From sequence record OR413578.1: a stretch of 64,000 nt of DNA. The stretch is one strand, 5' to 3'. Shown here piece after piece: positions 10,131 to 18,062 of this stretch. The notes under the pieces are model-generated. The model saw nothing but the letters and a program-made list of their open reading frames with translations. It was not told the DNA's origin and ran no database searches. How positions within the stretch are numbered: position 1 is the first letter of the stretch; every line of letters begins with the position of its first letter. The position numbers and the translations under genes are program-made.

Positions 10131-10640
10131 ATGTTTACTGCGCCAACCGTGCAGGTGGGGCAAGGTCTTAACCTGGTGGTACACGACCAGCGGTTAATCG
10201 ACCTCTGCGACACAAGCATAATTACTGCGATGATGGACCATAACCCTTTAGGTGACTACGGAAATACCAGCGAGATTTTGGCTGTTGCTGCCGTCCTCCG
10301 TCGTATTTACGGTCAAATAACCATCGTAGATCTCTGTAACTTCATTGACAACCACAGAGATTTAACTAAAGGGTTGGTCGCACTTACTCAAGATGGGGTG
10401 TCAAGTTTTGACAGTTCTCTTGGTAATTTCCTAGACATCGGTTCCGGGTTCGACTCCGGGCTAATGTTCATCACTCGTGAACGCTACGTCGCCGTCTGGG
10501 AATTTCTGCAACGCATGGGTGTGCATGTTCCTGCGAAGATCATGCATTACCAAACTTACGACCTGAATATTTTCGGGGAGCCGGGGTTATGGATAAAACC
10601 AGTACACCTTGGCCTTGATGGCTATACCATCAAGTGTTAA
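10131..10640 (+). CDS. Hypothetical protein
   Basis: SD AAGGAG before ATG 10131; 169 aa; followed by a terminator. Confidence 0.75.
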   Translation: MFTAPTVQVGQGLNLVVHDQRLIDLCDTSIITAMMDHNPLGDYGNTSEILAVAAVLRRIYGQITIVDLCNFIDNHRDLTKGLVALTQDGVSSFDSSLGNFLDIGSGFDSGLMFITRERYVAVWEFLQRMGVHVPAKIMHYQTYDLNIFGEPGLWIKPVHLGLDGYTIKC

Positions 10641-10647
10641 GTCACTA

Positions 10648-10673
10648 GGCGTACTCTCTTCGGGGAGTACGCC
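10648..10673 (+). terminator. Intrinsic terminator with UUCG loop
   Basis: GGCGTACTCTC-TTCG-GGGAGTACGCC followed by T-rich sequence. Confidence 0.8.
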
Positions 10674-11260
10674 AATCTTATTTTTTTATTTTTTTGGTTA
10701 CTTTTTAACCAACCGGTTAAAGGGGTCTGGGAAGCATCAGAAAACGATTAGGTGGTATCGATGTAGGGTAGCTCGTTTTTGGCAGTTTATCGTTTTCTAG
10801 GGTCGGTTACGTGCGTTTTAGAGGGGGTAATGTATCGAGACAGAGAATTTATTTTTGTCGGGGCGAGGAAATTCAGGGAATGGGGATTCAGGATTGTATG
10901 TTTTTTAACCAGTTATTAAAAACGCTCTAGAAAGCGCTAGAACGAGATTTAACTCAGACCCAGTACACTTGGGTTCCCTATACCGGAAAATCGCGCCAGC
11001 GGGCCGCTGAGAGCGCGAGAGTGCCATTCCCGTTTCGGTTCCGAGGTGACGGTCGCGGCCGGCGACGACGATCACACGTTGGGTAGCACTTCGTGCCATG
11101 TCTGGGTGAAAACTGGATCGTTCTGTAACCGACACACACTGTCGGTTACTTACGAGTTCTTTGGGTTGTTTAACTCGCTCTAAAATCCCCCTTAGGGGAT
11201 AATTTAATCTAATTCTCAAAATTTCTTTTTAAAACAATCACTTAGATTGTTTTTTAGATT

Positions 11261-11482
11261 GATCCTGTGGATCGGGTCGAAGACCCTTTCCTTATACGCG
11301 TGCGCGTGCGCACACCCGTATCCTCCAGGATCTTTTAAAATATATAATAATATTAAATATAATAATACCTTTAGGTATTATATTTAATTATTATAATTAT
11401 TTATATAAATAAATATATTAATATATTAAGATCTTAAAACGCGTGCAGGCGCGCGCGTGATCCTTATTAAGAGATCGTGATC
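11261..11482. other. Origin-like element: ~96% AT core flanked by 7 GATC sites
   Basis: 11333-11429 has 4 G/C in 97 nt; GATC at 11261, 11270, 11329, 11430, 11459, 11473, 11479; internal inverted repeat ATAATACCT-TT-AGGTATTAT. Confidence 0.5.
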
Positions 11483-11519
11483 GGACGGAAGACCGAGATT
11501 GTGTACCCTGTGTATTTTT

Positions 11520-12340
11520 TACGTGGTTTACCTATCGTGTGTTCAGACCACCACTCGATGTCCAAAAACCCATAGCTTCGGTGGTCGCCTCCCTGGTCGG
11601 TAGACTCTGACAAGTCGACCCACAACACCAACCCGTCCGGGGACGGATTTTTATTCCAACGACAAGCTCCACGAAAATCCCCGCAGAGGGACTCACTGCT
11701 GTGTGACTCACCGGCTCCTGGACGCCTACGCCTCGAGCCGGTAATTTTTTGATTACGTGAGTTTGTTGTTATATGCGAATAGCGATTGACCGCGCCAATG
11801 GTCCAATCACTTTTAAACCCTGCACGCTAGGGCTCCAAGTCCTGGGACTGTTACCCAGGACGCTTTTTCGAAAATACCTACCGTGGTGTCTTCGACAAAG
11901 CGCAATCTAACACTGCGTGATTTATTATGTTCTGGAAAACTTTCGCCGTGGAACAGAACCGGTGAGCGTCGGCGGGGATTCCGACAATCACCACCCATTC
12001 AGGTACTCGGTAAATAACCGGGCTATCGGCTTAAACGTCGAGGGCCTCGTTGGCACTGCAAGCGCCGGTGCATCCAGGACCGAGTTAGCCGTGGCAGCTC
12101 CAGAGGACTGGGCAGCGGAGAGACGTCGTTGAACTTACCTCCGATAGTCAGTCGCTGATTCCGCTCTGGGGTGCGGCCAGATTAAAATCGAATTCGGCGT
12201 TGCGTCGAAGCGTGGGTCTGCGTGTAGAACCGCAGACTTGGGGGATGATCTCCAGATGGAGGTGGTCAAAATATCTTGACTGCTCGGAACAGACGAGAGG
12301 GGTGGGTACTCCCGTTGTGAAACGCCAGTACCTGGCTGAT
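11520..12340 (+). ncRNA. Candidate long structured non-coding RNA region (strand uncertain)
   Basis: No convincing CDS; more than a dozen hairpins, e.g. ACCGGCTC/GAGCCGGT, GTCCTGGG/CCCAGGAC, GTCTGCG/CGCAGAC, CGTT-GTGA-AACG, long-range GCTATCGG/CCGATAGT. Confidence 0.45.
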
Positions 12341-12393
12341 TAAAATTTACAGATTCTGCGTGAGGTATGATAAACCAAACGGAGAATTAAACC

Positions 12394-12969
12394 ATGAACT
12401 TGTATCGCATCGGGTTTTACCGAAACGAGATGCCTGAATCGGTTTTGGTTGTCTTAGCCGAAAACGAGGAGCAGGCCAAATCCTTCTGGCCGGTTAGCGC
12501 AGAGCGTCCAGCGGTTGCGTGCTGCTACGACGGCGCTGTGTCTACCCCGATGGTTACGCCTGGGGTGGTTCTGAAGCAAGGCCGTTGGGATGATTATTCC
12601 CATCCCGGTTTGGAATTTGTTTCCGAATCCGCCAGACACACCTGGAATCTCACCACGGGTAAAACCAGAGTGTACTTCGGCCACCAAGCCAAGCAACCGT
12701 CGCTCATCAAGCTGTACCTGGTTTACAGCGACGTCGCTACCGAAGACTATGTCGACACCGGAATCATCGTCGGGGCAACAACCCCCGAGGCGGCATTCGC
12801 ACATTGGGACGGTGATAAACCCGGAATCGTTTCGGTCTGTGAGCTACCACTTGAAGCCGGTTTGGTTACGAACATCAAGTGTGAGCAAGGCCAGGAGCTG
12901 ACTTGGATGCGCCAGGATTACCTGACGGAAACGACATTCGAGTACACACCGAGGAAGGTGGCCCAATGA
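12394..12969 (+). CDS. Hypothetical protein with an internally duplicated domain
   Basis: SD GGAG; two related halves (MNLYRIG...VLAENEEQA and IKLYLVY...VGATTPEAA). Confidence 0.8.
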   Translation: MNLYRIGFYRNEMPESVLVVLAENEEQAKSFWPVSAERPAVACCYDGAVSTPMVTPGVVLKQGRWDDYSHPGLEFVSESARHTWNLTTGKTRVYFGHQAKQPSLIKLYLVYSDVATEDYVDTGIIVGATTPEAAFAHWDGDKPGIVSVCELPLEAGLVTNIKCEQGQELTWMRQDYLTETTFEYTPRKVAQ

Positions 12970-13457
12970 CGACGATAGCGTTCGATGGAAAAGTCTTAGC
13001 TGCTGACGGTCAGCTGACCCGCGGGTCGAATATCTGCAACCTGAACACCCAGAAGTTATTCATCTGCCCTTCTGACGAGGAATGGTGGATTACTGGTGAA
13101 CGGATTGTGGCGTTCGGAGTAAGCGGTGACATCACAGGACAGTTGGCCCTGCTGGAAACTATCCGCTTGAGACCTGGTTACAAGGGGTTAACGCAAAGCT
13201 CGCAGTTACCTGCGAAGATGGATTTTACTTTCCTGATGCTTCTGGCCTCAGGGAAAGCGATAGTCGGTGGGAAGCGTGAAGACGACGTGACGTTGTGGTG
13301 GAGTGAAGCCACACCACCTCTGGCAACCGGAAGTGGTTACGAGTATGCGTTGGGTGCGATGAAGATGGGCGCGAATGCGGTTCGTGCTGTTGAGATTGCG
13401 TCCGAATGCGATATCTACACCGGTGGTGAGATTAGCACTTACGAACTACGGAGGTGA
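12966..13457 (+). CDS. Ntn-hydrolase (HslV/proteasome-beta-like) peptidase
   Basis: ATGA coupling; N-terminus MTTIAFDGKVLAAD, then GSG..YALGAM and D..TGG, typical of the phage HslV-like family. Confidence 0.75.
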   Translation: MTTIAFDGKVLAADGQLTRGSNICNLNTQKLFICPSDEEWWITGERIVAFGVSGDITGQLALLETIRLRPGYKGLTQSSQLPAKMDFTFLMLLASGKAIVGGKREDDVTLWWSEATPPLATGSGYEYALGAMKMGANAVRAVEIASECDIYTGGEISTYELRR

Positions 13458-13460
13458 ATC

Positions 13461-13511
13461 ATGCGGGAGTCAGAAGCACGCAAGCTTGACCCCATCAATC
13501 GCCTGCGATAA
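13461..13511 (+). CDS. Putative 16-aa micro-ORF (MRESEARKLDPINRLR)
   Basis: Strong SD GGAGGTGA overlapping the upstream stop codon, just before the ATG; not in the ORF track. Confidence 0.4.
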   Translation: MRESEARKLDPINRLR

Positions 13512-13550
13512 CGGGGTAGCGCATCCGTATAAACACGTTTAAAGAATTCT

Positions 13551-13626
13551 GGGGGTATGGCGCAATTGGTAGCGCACCGGTCTCCAAAACCGAAGGTTCG
13601 AGGTTCGAAACCTCGTGCCCCCGCCA
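13551..13626 (+). tRNA. trnW: tRNA-Trp (CCA)
   Basis: Full cloverleaf: GGGGGTA/TGCCCCC acceptor, GCGC D-stem, loop CTCCAAA, T-arm CGAGG-TTCGAAA-CCTCG, encoded CCA. Confidence 0.95.
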
Positions 13627-13690
13627 CATTTAGCCAACGAATTCAGGTTCAACACAGAAGACACAGATCTGTCAACTGTTGGAGAACAAC

Positions 13691-13933
13691 ATGAATTTGT
13701 ACTTGCTAGAACGAACTGACGATATCGGGTATGATGAATTTGATTCCATAATCGTGGCGGCTCCTACGGAGCAAGCCGCGTGTGCAATTCCTCCCGACTG
13801 TGGTCATTGGATGGACTGCCGCTGGTTACCGAAAGAGCGCTGGGATGAAGGGCTTACCCTGACCGTTACTCTTATCGGTACTACGCACTATCCTGCTGGG
13901 ACCGTCGTTCATGAATCGTTCAATGCTGGCTAA
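13691..13933 (+). CDS. Hypothetical protein, single-domain paralog of the 12394 repeat
   Basis: SD GGAG; MNLYLLERTDDIGYDEFDSIIVAAPTEQAA. Confidence 0.8.
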   Translation: MNLYLLERTDDIGYDEFDSIIVAAPTEQAACAIPPDCGHWMDCRWLPKERWDEGLTLTVTLIGTTHYPAGTVVHESFNAG

Positions 13934-13935
13934 AC

Positions 13936-13953
13936 AGTGGGCTTCGGCCCACT
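13936..13953. terminator. Hairpin with UUCG loop (terminator or stability element)
   Basis: AGTGGGC-TTCG-GCCCACT right after the stop codon; no clear U-tract. Confidence 0.55.
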
Positions 13954-14207
13954 AACCCTATTCGAGCCGTGATACTTACTCAGATTGTGCGGGTTGATGT
14001 CCCGCATGAGCCGGTAGCAGCTCAGACCTACGGTAGACCAATAAATCCGTAGCAGCCAGGTACACAAAGCACCAGGTCGCTTGTACAGGATGCTGGGTAT
14101 CTGACCGGTCATAACCTCATTCGATACGAGACACGTTTATGCATGAAATACTCCAGTACATCAGGATGTTGATTTCCAACGTCCGGTTCTGGGTATTCAA
14201 TCATGTT

Positions 14208-14332
14208 TGGTTTACAGGCGATGGGTTTTCCCGCAAGGGCCCCACTTACAGACTGGCGTCTCCACGACAACCGTCCCTAGGGGACAGGCAAGCACCGGCC
14301 CATTAAGCCGCCACGCTACGCCTGTAAATCCA
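14208..14332 (+). ncRNA. Candidate 125-nt structured RNA ending in CCA
   Basis: TTTACAGGCG (14211-20) pairs with CGCCTGTAAA (14319-28); internal CCC-GCAA-GGG and GTCCC-TAG-GGGAC hairpins; possible pseudoknot. Confidence 0.5.
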
Positions 14333-14714
14333 CAATCTGATAACCGAATGGGATTGAGTTCCCAGTGTTAGGGTGACTGTGTGTCACCGTAGGCGCGGTA
14401 CCTCATACGGCCGGTACGCCACGAATGTACGTGATAGCGGGTGGTGCTTGGAGGCGCTAAGACCTGACCTTACGGCCAGGCTCAGAAGAAGAAGTCCATC
14501 ACCCGCATTCAGAAATGAATTTAGGTTAATTATTATTTATGGAAGTGATGAAATCGTTTACGTGATAACTTAGTAGTATGCAACGAACAATACCAGAGTG
14601 ACTTTACGAGGTTACTGTGGTATATGTCGGTGCTCCGGGCAACGTGTTGCCGCAGATAAGCCCGAGGGAGCTGAGTGCACTAACACACGCCGGGATGCAC
14701 CGGCACCTTACAAT

Positions 14715-14796
14715 GGGAGCGCTGTCACCATCAGTGATGACTGGAGTGAAGGATTCGTACCTCACTCGACTGGGCGGAAGCCTGGGCGTTCCCCCA
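14715..14796 (+). ncRNA. Candidate four-way-junction tRNA-mimic RNA ending in CCA
   Basis: GGGAGCGCT/GGGCGTTCCC closing stem, three internal hairpins, 3' CCA. Confidence 0.45.
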
Positions 14797-14977
14797 TCTT
14801 CACATCATGGCCGGCTTGCCGGTTCAACGTAGACGTCTCGTAAGAGATTTCCAGTCAGGCAACTGATAACACACCTAAGCGTCGACCTGGACGTATGGTG
14901 TCTGGTTAAGTCCCCCGAAACGGAAACCAGTAGGGGTGTGGTACGTTGAGTGTAACTATCATGATGCCATGAACAAT

Positions 14978-15047
14978 GGCTTTGTAGCTCAGGTAGGTAG
15001 AGCAACCTCTTCGAGGAAGGTCGCCGGTTCGAGTCCGGTCAAAGCAA
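14978..15047 (+). ncRNA. tRNA-like element with truncated anticodon arm (pseudo-tRNA)
   Basis: Acceptor GCTTTG/CAAAGC, D-arm GCTC..GAGC and T-arm GCCGG-TTCGAGT-CCGGT are intact; anticodon arm is 13 nt (ACCTCTTCGAGGA) instead of 17; no CCA. Confidence 0.75.
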
Positions 15048-15128
15048 GAGCAGCGAAGTTAGAGGAATTAACACCCGACTCATAATCGGATATTTCGACG
15101 GTTCGAATCCGTCCGTTTGCTCGCCCCA
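15048..15128 (+). tRNA. Atypical tRNA with CAT anticodon (Met or Ile2) and a bulged acceptor stem
   Basis: Anticodon arm CCCGA-CTCATAA-TCGGA, T-arm GACGG-TTCGAAT-CCGTC; acceptor GAGCAGCG/CGTTTGCTC pairs only with a bulge; 3' GCCCCA. Confidence 0.65.
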
Positions 15129-15131
15129 TTT

Positions 15132-15413
15132 GTGTTACCCTTATCCCGAAGGCATTCGAATTAAGACGCGTATCCACACACGGGTCAAGGGTAACACGAA
15201 CCACTTCCGCGGTCACCGTGTCCATTGCCGCCTACCTGCATGGGCTGTCCTCCGACACGGTGACTTCGGGCCAACTTACAGGCCAGGGCCGTTTGGGTTT
15301 TTCTTACGCATCCATCCAGAGCCACCTCGCGCCCTAGTCTGTATACCCCTTTTCTGTTCCTGGTTTGCCAACTAAATCAATTAAGCCTGGTGCGTTGCCC
15401 TGGGAACAGAAAA
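15132..15413 (+). ncRNA. Three stem-loop modules, each closed by a perfect 11-bp stem
   Basis: GTGTTACCCTT/AAGGGTAACAC (15132-15197), GTCACCGTGTC/GACACGGTGAC (15212-15264), TTTTCTGTTCC/GGAACAGAAAA (15350-15413). Confidence 0.5.
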
Positions 15414-15501
15414 ACTTATTCGGTTACACACCGAACCCACCCACGAGGGATATGTCGTGGACTACCAATAGAAGCAGCAATAGTAGTAAGAAGGAAGCAA
15501 C

Positions 15502-16323
15502 ATGTTTACAGTTAAACGTGTAATTGATGGTGACCGCATTATTACCGAACATGAAAAAGTTCGTATCGGTGACCGTAAGTCTCGTGTATTCCGCGAGGCG
15601 TTAAAAATGCTCGAGAACGAGCGCTTCGACATCGTTGTCGATGATGAAAAGTTAGCCCTTAATCCGGGGTTAAAACGCGTTGCCCCTGATGTGCCTGATC
15701 CGAACACCATGCATTTGTCTGACTACTGCAGCTGGTCGCACAGATTATATAAAAGTCAGGTTTATGCACACACGTATTTGCGGCAGCTTTTCCCCAACCT
15801 TATTATCCCCGATTTGGAAACGGTCGAGGTGTTTAACTGCAACGCACGCGAGTTTATTAGCTACGTGCTAGATAATAAGGGCAATGCTATCTTGGTACTG
15901 GACACAAATTCCCGCATACCTGATGCTGTGGCTAGCATACGTGGTGAAATCATCGGTTACGGTACTCCCCCAGAGAAATTAGGCTGGTACAAACCATCTC
16001 CTGATAGCGACATGGCGATCATTGTCTACACTCAGGAAGAACTGCAACAAGTCGAATTAGAGCCTGGTCCATCTATCGAGTTCACTGATGTCCAGGAGCA
16101 GTCGCAGTGGATTAACGGTGAGTCTGTTGTTACTGTTTTAAAAGGCGCTCGCCCTGGCGACCGGTCAGTCGATGAACTGATTGGCGCAATGTGCATCGAA
16201 GAAGAATCTGGATACGATCCTGATAACCAGATCAGTACCGGTGCGTTGTACGAACTGTTTTATAAAGGCGACGAAGTCTACGTGGTTAACTCTCACGGTA
16301 AGACTACCGACGTCCTTCGCTGA
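15502..16323 (+). CDS. Hypothetical protein
   Basis: 273 aa; SD AAGGAAG. Confidence 0.8.
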   Translation: MFTVKRVIDGDRIITEHEKVRIGDRKSRVFREALKMLENERFDIVVDDEKLALNPGLKRVAPDVPDPNTMHLSDYCSWSHRLYKSQVYAHTYLRQLFPNLIIPDLETVEVFNCNAREFISYVLDNKGNAILVLDTNSRIPDAVASIRGEIIGYGTPPEKLGWYKPSPDSDMAIIVYTQEELQQVELEPGPSIEFTDVQEQSQWINGESVVTVLKGARPGDRSVDELIGAMCIEEESGYDPDNQISTGALYELFYKGDEVYVVNSHGKTTDVLR

Positions 16324-17995: not shown

Positions 17996-18062
17996 CTTTT
18001 TTACGGCAGGCACCTATCTTGTAGGGAGTCTGTGCTGTAATAGATTCCAAAGGAGATGCTCG

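Follow-up and report, generated by a model that had tools for sequence, protein, structure and literature searches.

A Conserved, Structured RNA Region beside an Origin-like Element in SPN3US-like Jumbo Phages

Introduction

Small RNAs derived from 5' untranslated regions, together with units of premature termination, have been reported from the chimalliviruses 201phi2-1 and phiKZ (PMC11512511). In these phages, as in the related jumbo phage SPLA1a described here, a hairpin and U-run follow soon after the transcript start, in non-coding 5' regions, some of which lie beside tRNA genes. The RNAs of 201phi2-1 and phiKZ are shorter than 250 nt and are conserved mainly by position (PMC11512511), whereas SPLA1a has three such units, followed by a leader and core of ~480 nt with eight helices and strong covariation; the likeness is one of layout.

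The phage-borne RNAs GOLLD and ROOL (RF01998 and RF03087) also consist of many helices and lie near tRNA genes, as does the SPLA1a RNA. The latter is smaller, however, has no Rfam match at any threshold, is restricted to SPN3US-like jumbo phages, contains a complement to the anti-Shine-Dalgarno (anti-SD) sequence, and sits directly upstream of a gene. The core of the SPLA1a RNA is also reminiscent of translational riboswitches and leaders, in which several helices include a closing helix over the start codon (here P1) and a neighbor with an SD-like GGAG (here P5). It differs from these in that double changes are absent from P1, the gene behind the RNA varies, and the controlled reading frame would be a mini-ORF that is itself not conserved.

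Transcripts that serve replication origins include RNA II of ColE1, phi1.1A/B of T7, and those of oriF and oriG of T4. The SPLA1a transcript resembles these RNAs in being structured or rich in G and purines, and in lying beside an AT-rich, origin-like element, with priming by an RNA-DNA hybrid presumed, but it runs away from the AT-rich core. Phage T4 also encodes the stable RNAs C and D, which are non-coding and lie in a tRNA cluster; they are much smaller than the SPLA1a RNA, and resemble it as RNAs encoded beside the tRNA genes of a large phage.

Nucleus-forming jumbo phages have been studied intensively, yet very little is understood of their RNA biology, and their replication origins and means of priming are still obscure. 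No primase is known from chimalliviruses, and it has been suggested that their replication initiates at RNA-DNA hybrids (PMC13648698). Against this background, a structured RNA family present once per genome, and fixed beside the most AT-rich, GATC-dense spot in four genera, offers a concrete, mutable target for the study of how mRNAs of the phage nucleus are handed over to ribosomes, and of where and how replication starts.

The Locus and Its Conservation

The stretch of DNA analyzed (the window; 64,000 nt) is identical to the sequence of the Salmonella phage SPLA1a (OR413578.1; genus Seoulvirus), a nucleus-forming, SPN3US-like phage with a genome of 240 kb, and the coordinates of record and window coincide. 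Positions 11520-12340 belong to an ORF-free gap of ~1.75 kb (10641-12393), which is bordered by a conserved 169-aa gene on one side and a 191-aa gene on the other, and in which no record annotates any feature. A reading of the sequence alone had described these ~800 nt as densely structured and non-coding, possibly a new large phage ncRNA. The non-coding status was borne out: 11520-12340 contains no ORF longer than 71 aa, none of its eight small ORFs matches PHROGs, and the substitutions relative to two diverged relatives are spread over the codon phases at 0.256, 0.238, and 0.227, with no 3-nt periodicity.

The two relatives are the Seoulvirus SPAsTU (70% identity) and the Erwinia phage pEa_SNUABM_29 (68%), both of which are colinear with SPLA1a over 10682-12338. 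Their flanking genes differ, and additional genes have entered to the left and right of this interval but not within it. Identity over 11521-12340 is mostly 0.6-0.9, falling to ~0.3 in a variable zone at 12001-12080, while the third codon positions of the neighboring genes reach merely 0.34-0.68 in the same two phages. The identity above the third-position level, taken with the lack of periodicity and of PHROGs matches, marks the region as non-coding and under purifying selection. Profile searches beyond Seoulvirus, which took in Erskinevirus, Machinavirus, Wellingtonvirus, and uncultivated contigs, recovered three parts as universal across the genera: a left module (10900-11130), the AT/GATC-rich core (11260-11500), and the right end (12080-12345).

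The AT-rich core is palindromic (11261-11482), is flanked by GC-rich repeats, and includes the lowest-GC 150-nt window of the 240-kb genome. GATC occurs 7 times within these 222 bp, whereas the genome as a whole has fewer copies of the motif than expected (136 found versus 249). The AT-rich core is conserved in all genera while remaining nearly silent in RNA-labelled runs, and has the appearance of an origin or unwinding element. All genera share the order L2 - AT/GATC core - spacer - RNA core, with gene insertions outside only. Across them, it is this origin-like element, and not any particular gene, that stays linked to the RNA core.

In 11520-12340, direct repeats and iterons amount to short families at chance level; GTGRTCC is not enriched as a repeated DNA site, and TTTTTTACGTG, with 3 matches genome-wide versus 1.95 expected, is not significant as a genome-wide motif. 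To the left of the AT-rich core, the arm at 10682-11250 is conserved as much as the right arm, with near-zero coverage in RNA-labelled runs, and includes a hairpin at ~11121-11147 with a compensatory change, as well as a 100-nt stretch (10799-10899) that ranks in the genome's top ten for G content.

Transcription and the 5' Modules

The region to the right of the AT-rich core divides, up to the core RNA, into the following features.

11514-11552, plus strand: T-run and TACCTATCGTG motif just upstream of the RNA 5' end; a candidate promoter region, kept in three Seoulvirus lineages
11553-11652, plus strand: Unit A, with the 5' end at 11553/4, a long hairpin (11588-11646), and then a U-run (consensus fold)
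11655-11752, plus strand: Unit B, small hairpins, then a hairpin (11710-11742) and U-run (consensus fold)
11753-11838, plus strand: body of Unit C, highly conserved (identity 0.92 over 11761-11800), with a hairpin at 11818-11832
11839-11871, plus strand: hairpin 11839-11861 and invariant motif TTTTTCGA, the universal start of the leader
11872-12015, plus strand: leader, with a small covarying hairpin (11874-11889), then the conserved motifs GACAAAGC, CTAACAC, and TTCAGGT
12016-12079, plus strand: hypervariable spacer with large indels and an identity of 0.32-0.35

The evidence of transcription is indirect, since the sole public data carrying this sequence are assembled contigs of sequencing runs, from which neither the strand nor the ends nor the abundance of an RNA can be proven. 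Contigs start at 11553/4, ~70 nt beyond the rightmost GATC of the AT/GATC-rich core, in three RNA-labelled runs, one of which (X14) belongs to one study and two (X5 and X6) to another. Both X14 and X5 have adapter letters ahead of this start. Those in X14 are taken to be the part of the MGI adapter that is common to both read adapters, and the 26 letters in X5 are presumably the Illumina read-2 primer, extending past the part that is shared with read 1; the latter type would be as expected for the 5' end of a plus-sense RNA in a stranded library. The depth over 10625-11552 is ~0-8 in the RNA-labelled runs, against hundreds to tens of thousands in the flanks, whereas X1, probably a DNA run, covers the same interval evenly, an internal control that argues against carry-over of DNA. 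The X14 contig extends from 11554 across all three modules and the core, and on into the genes that follow.

In the relatives, 11553/4 aligns with (A/G)CTCGATG, and Machinavirus-type phages have, directly before CTCGATG at the equivalent position, a TATG, the motif reported for the late promoters of phiKZ (PMC7598289). These alignments suggest that 11553/4 is probably a conserved transcription start site. One hairpin listed in the sequence-only reading, GACCACC/GGTGGTC, was located at 11546-52/11580-86; as the mapped 5' end falls just after its 5' arm, it is probably not part of the RNA.

Downstream of this start, three further hairpins of that reading, each followed by a T-run, lie at 11633, 11710, and 11839, and have the G+C-rich stem-loop and U-run shape of intrinsic terminators or attenuators. 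They are among 13 terminator-like sites in 10500-15600, where 5.3 would be expected. At all three sites, the hairpin and T-run are retained while the letters of the stem vary between lineages, as seen in Unit B, the hairpin of which is kept despite a different stem sequence. A good alignment of the modules at 11553-11870 is confined to Seoulvirus; Erskinevirus gives weak matches, and the other genera have one to three hairpin and U-run units of different sequence. A contig of X5 (11553-11750) stops at the second U-run, and that of X14 passes all three, although contigs cannot show the ends of RNAs.

A T-run followed by AC (TTTTTTAC) recurs shortly after hairpins in intergenic DNA, at 17997 and 27206, and genome-wide at, for example, 106746, 180322, and 191984. 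This motif may be part of the terminator or promoter signals of the clade; TTTTTAC sites often follow hairpins in intergenic DNA, and no promoter could be defined from them. A near-copy of the TACCTATCGTG motif lies at 11876-11886.

The leader begins with the hairpin and TTTTTCGA, the eight invariant columns of which (11863-11870) are U-rich in the RNA. This pair of elements was found 100-230 nt upstream of the core in 18/18 relatives checked, with stem sequences that differ wholly between lineages. Further into the leader, module D1 has nhmmer matches in Erskinevirus, and the predicted GGTGA..TCACC hairpin, located at 11961-11992, is an expansion specific to Seoulvirus and Erskinevirus. The spacer that follows is swapped for other letters in contigs of the relatives (joint 12020/12080). 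The presence of the universal hairpin and TTTTTCGA element upstream of the core makes ~11839-12339 a natural unit, the ends of which are conserved in every SPN3US-like genus examined. The earlier proposal of two RNAs, at 11540-11900 and 11940-12330, cuts across these divisions, which are the modules at 11553-11870 and the leader plus core at ~11839-12339.

Structure of the Core RNA

12089-12339, plus strand: core structured RNA of ~250 nt with eight helices, from the alignment of 20 members, a consensus fold, and pair counts
12089-94/12277-82, plus strand: P1, putative
12097-102/12167-72, plus strand: P2, double changes
12126-31/12139-44, plus strand: P2a, loop AACTTAC
12193-99/12203-09, plus strand: P3, double changes
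12215-22/12231-38, plus strand: P4, double changes
12250-53/12258-61, plus strand: P5, double changes
12283-86/12294-97, plus strand: P6, never varies
12300-16/12321-37, plus strand: P7, GNRA loop at 12317-20
12258-12278, plus strand: anti-SD complement (12258-12268), 7-nt spacer, and invariant TTG (12276-78)
12273-12302, plus strand: near-invariant 30-nt block with a purine-rich 3' half, most columns identical in all members; includes P6

The eight helices were obtained from RNAalifold together with inspection, on an alignment of 20 non-redundant members from four genera and uncultivated phages. Covariation was assessed by counting pairs, with the partners slid by 1-3 columns and 500 shuffles as controls, in place of R-scape. 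In the proposed structure, 87.4% of the cells pair, compared with 37-48% in the slid controls, and 26 pairs have changed on both sides (11-15 in the controls), with 115 cells carrying such two-sided changes (23-31 in the controls). The covariation score is 0.335 versus ~0.09, and 0/500 shuffles reach the observed score; realignment of the members with the model gave the same picture. The helices of the core are supported by compensatory changes beyond those of the controls, and its RNA fold is under selection.

The support is greatest in P7, where nine pairs show double changes and 97% of the cells pair, while P2, P2a, P3, P4, and P5 have two to five double-change pairs each. P1 varies on one side only, with no double compensatory change, and remains putative; P6 never varies and is, therefore, uninformative either way. 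The loop of P7 is always of the GNRA type, as GUGA in 11 members, GAGA in 4, GCGA in 4, and GGGA in 1. G-U cells outnumber A-C cells by 180 to 22, and only 72.6% of the cells would pair if the helices were read on the minus strand. Together with the constant GNRA loop, these counts assign the fold to the RNA of the plus strand. The core ends in a conserved GCTGA (12335-39), the GCTG of which is invariant, with the final A in at least 90% of the members. A single 1-nt indel in or near the 30-nt block separates the SPN3US group from all other members.

Most of the hairpins named in the sequence-only reading exist, and seven were located. Two of these, GTCTGCG/CGCAGAC (12216-22/12232-38) and a hairpin capped by GTGA (12300-12337), show many compensatory changes. 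The long-range pair between ~12021 and ~12141, on the other hand, is not conserved and finds no support, because its 5' partner lies within the hypervariable zone (12010-12080) that the relatives replace.

The folding energy is uneven in its distribution. Over the whole of 11553-12345, the z score relative to 20 shuffles is -4.0 on the plus strand and -5.8 on the minus strand, but it is -2.2 for the core by itself (12080-12345). In a sliding scan with 200-nt windows, the dense structure that had been proposed for ~800 nt was found at 11600-12000 (z -3 to -5), but not at 11500-11700 or 11900-12300 (z ~ -1). With a z of -2.2, and ~ -1 in the windows of 11900-12300, the part that covaries best has an unremarkable folding energy, which alone would not have exposed the core RNA.

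Distribution and Novelty

A covariance model of the core finds exactly one copy per genome, including the 240-kb genome of SPLA1a, and the family extends over SPN3US-like jumbo phages of four genera and uncultivated phages. A scan of 185,579 prokaryote species genomes for the invariant motif returned 0 matches, and ~10 of the 57 pattern matches in metagenomes are true family members, the others being due to chance. Searches with a syntenic 377-aa protein, both by itself and in the form of a profile, led to the same clade and to no more distant relatives.

The failure to recognize tmRNA, RNase P, or a group I intron by eye was confirmed by Rfam and ARAGORN searches, which found no family. At the gathering threshold, Rfam 15, which includes tmRNA, RNase P, group I/II introns, 6S, GOLLD, ROOL, riboswitches, and self-cleaving ribozymes, returned three tRNA matches in the whole window and nothing else. 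At E <= 10, 10600-12450 gave only noise (best 19 bits versus a threshold of 60), and ARAGORN found no tmRNA. No description of this region was found in the literature.

The core is a previously undescribed RNA family of the SPN3US-like chimalliviruses. The suggestion of a new phage ncRNA is upheld to the extent that the region is conserved, lacks a coding signal, is covered by RNA-labelled contigs, matches nothing in Rfam, and covaries on the plus strand; it is not, however, a single, uniformly folded RNA of ~800 nt. That suggestion also left out of account the neighboring origin-like, AT-rich core and the very strong anti-SD complement. Very probably, a selected and structured RNA of the plus strand is transcribed from this locus.

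The Anti-Shine-Dalgarno Complement and the Mini-ORF

The duplex predicted between 12258-12268 and the 3' tail of the 16S rRNA has an energy of -19.5 kcal/mol, compared with a mean of -6.9 and a best value of -12.8 kcal/mol in the SD regions of 42 genes. No other anti-SD site on the plus strand is as strong, and over both strands of the 240-kb genome it ranks second. The predicted duplex is maintained, at -15 to -21 kcal/mol, in 20/20 members, with letters that vary among them, including an A/G exchange at a position that would face a U. Other sites with -18 to -19.7 kcal/mol to the 16S 3' tail are found in OR413578.1 at 231001 (plus strand), and at 132024 and 195556 (minus strand).

The UUG at 12276 follows the anti-SD duplex by 8 nt in SPLA1a, and the GGAGG core by 10-14 nt across the members. 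Within the fold, the 3' arm of P5 contains the GGAG, and the 3' strand of P1, a putative helix with one-sided variation, contains the invariant UUG. The mini-ORF that would begin at the UUG has 13, 14, or 20 codons, or is open, and its frame is shifted by the 1-nt indel in the SPN3US group. Its second half follows a covarying stem, and its first half is invariant even at wobble positions. The conservation of frame and peptide that would be expected of a small protein gene was not seen among the 20 members.

Possible Roles of the RNA

The region is read here, tentatively, as a structured, ribosome-engaging leader (or ncRNA) of a rightward transcription unit, a statement that, as a whole, has a probability of about 45%. 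The unit would start on the plus strand at 11553/4, beside the origin-like core, and the region would form its non-coding 5' part. The three hairpin and U-run modules would come first, with the look of attenuators or of sites that yield short RNAs by premature termination. The conserved RNA would be next, consisting of the leader, with its hairpin and U-rich motif (11839-11871), and then the ~250-nt core (12089-12339), which most likely acts in cis as a ribosome-engaging leader. Given that P5 and P1 hold the anti-SD complement and the UUG, their folding would decide the loading of the 30S subunit and the read-through of P6/P7 toward the next gene.

This leader reading is preferred because a plus-strand gene always follows at a short distance (~30-70 nt behind the core in each annotated relative examined), the RNA lacks its own terminator, and helices enclose both the SD and the start codon. 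The gene found at this point varies, however, among SPLA1a, SPN3US, SPAsTU, SNUABM29, phiEaH2, Huxley, and SNUABM9, unlike that of a classical riboswitch or a leader of the ribosomal-protein type, and no association of the core with one gene or pathway was found among the relatives compared. The absence of double changes in P1, the shifts in the frame and length of the mini-ORF, and the long spacing from GGAGG to UUG also count against it, as does the linkage of the core, across genera, to the origin-like element instead of to a gene.

The retention of the fold and the 30-nt block, whatever gene is downstream, would suit a stand-alone, stable ncRNA, cut from the leader and acting in trans by binding a host or phage factor (the 30S subunit via the anti-SD site, or a phage protein on the block), which is a possible, though doubtful, alternative. 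A T-rich, promoter-like motif behind the core in several genera means that the core could be a separate RNA in these phages, no gene SD in the sample comes near the anti-SD complement in strength, and small RNAs derived from 5' untranslated regions have been reported from giant phages (PMC11512511). A trans-acting RNA is, nevertheless, at odds with the lack of a terminator after P7 and with the RNA contigs, which show no discrete 3' end and continue from the core into the downstream genes, while a sponge would require a high abundance, which is beyond what contigs can show.

The constant neighborhood of the AT-rich core raises a further explanation, in which the transcript serves the origin-like element, either through transcription that aids unwinding, or through an R-loop of the core that is trimmed by an RNase H-clamp into a primer, in phages that have no primase. 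It is judged improbable. It would account for the order of elements kept in all genera, and for the low GC content and concentration of GATC sites in the AT-rich core of a GATC-depleted genome. The purine-rich invariant block and the G excess of the region, in the 99.7th percentile, are also consistent with it, as are the absence of a primase and the proposal of initiation at hybrids (PMC13648698). Unlike the origin transcripts of ColE1 (RNA II), T7, and T4, however, this transcript does not read into the unwinding element, as it starts at 11553, already past the AT-rich core (11320-11440), and runs rightward, away from it. The richness in G and purines is high but below the genome maximum, the cumulative GC skew of the genome has no V-shape and no origin signal, and none of these phages has a mapped origin. 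A more specific version, in which the purine- and G-rich leader and core are the origin RNA of the SPN3US-like chimalliviruses, and start replication by transcription and/or the R-loop trimmed by the RNase H-clamp, has a slimmer chance still; if true, it would identify the origin of nucleus-forming phages as well as the way in which they prime replication.

The two remaining explanations are unlikely. That the hairpins act as DNA, in the form of single-strand initiation or packaging signals or protein-binding sites, with no role for the RNA, would agree with the adjoining origin-like element and with a left arm (10682-11250) that is equally conserved yet almost silent in the RNA-labelled runs, but it deserves very little credence, in view of the four GNRA variants in the P7 loop, the excess of G-U over A-C cells, and the RNA-labelled contigs over the region. 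Unannotated or decayed genes for small proteins, such as the mini-ORF at the invariant TTG, are the least credible of all, given the indel that shifts the frame in the SPN3US group, a peptide of which one half tracks a stem and the other is invariant at wobble positions, and the lack of 3-nt periodicity and of PHROGs matches, even though a strong SD-like site precedes the TTG, the frame is open for at least 13 codons in 20/20 members (with a stop in the conserved GCTGA in 12/20), and gp278 of Huxley is annotated across the core.

Neighboring Genes and Database Records

The proteins flanking the region gave no functional hint in searches of Pfam and PHROGs. The 191-aa gene (12394-12969) directly after the RNA is an indel, missing from SPN3US, SPLA3, SaP7, and MET_P1, and it is omitted from one contig of the RNA runs (joint 12393/12966).

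In the Erwinia phage Kwan (L005 3660-4525), and in the same way in Wellington (L030), the RNA gene is interrupted at P5 by a cassette of ~600 nt that carries an HNH endonuclease gene, with both halves remaining recognizable. No group I intron was found around the Kwan insertion, where the sole match was a sub-threshold int-alpA RNA motif ahead of the cassette (31 bits versus a threshold of 35.8). The cassette is absent from a related uncultivated contig (L031).

The database records of the clade would benefit from correction at this locus. Many GenBank records begin within the non-coding block, that of SPN3US at window position 11225 and others at ~11360-11432, which splits the element across the ends of the record; these starts probably reflect breaks in the assembly, or conventions, at the AT-rich core. 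In several records, hypothetical CDSs have been annotated on top of the conserved RNA, such as gp278 of Huxley (L017 2223-2636) and small CDSs in phiEaH2, Asesino, and ChrisDB, and these are probably spurious.
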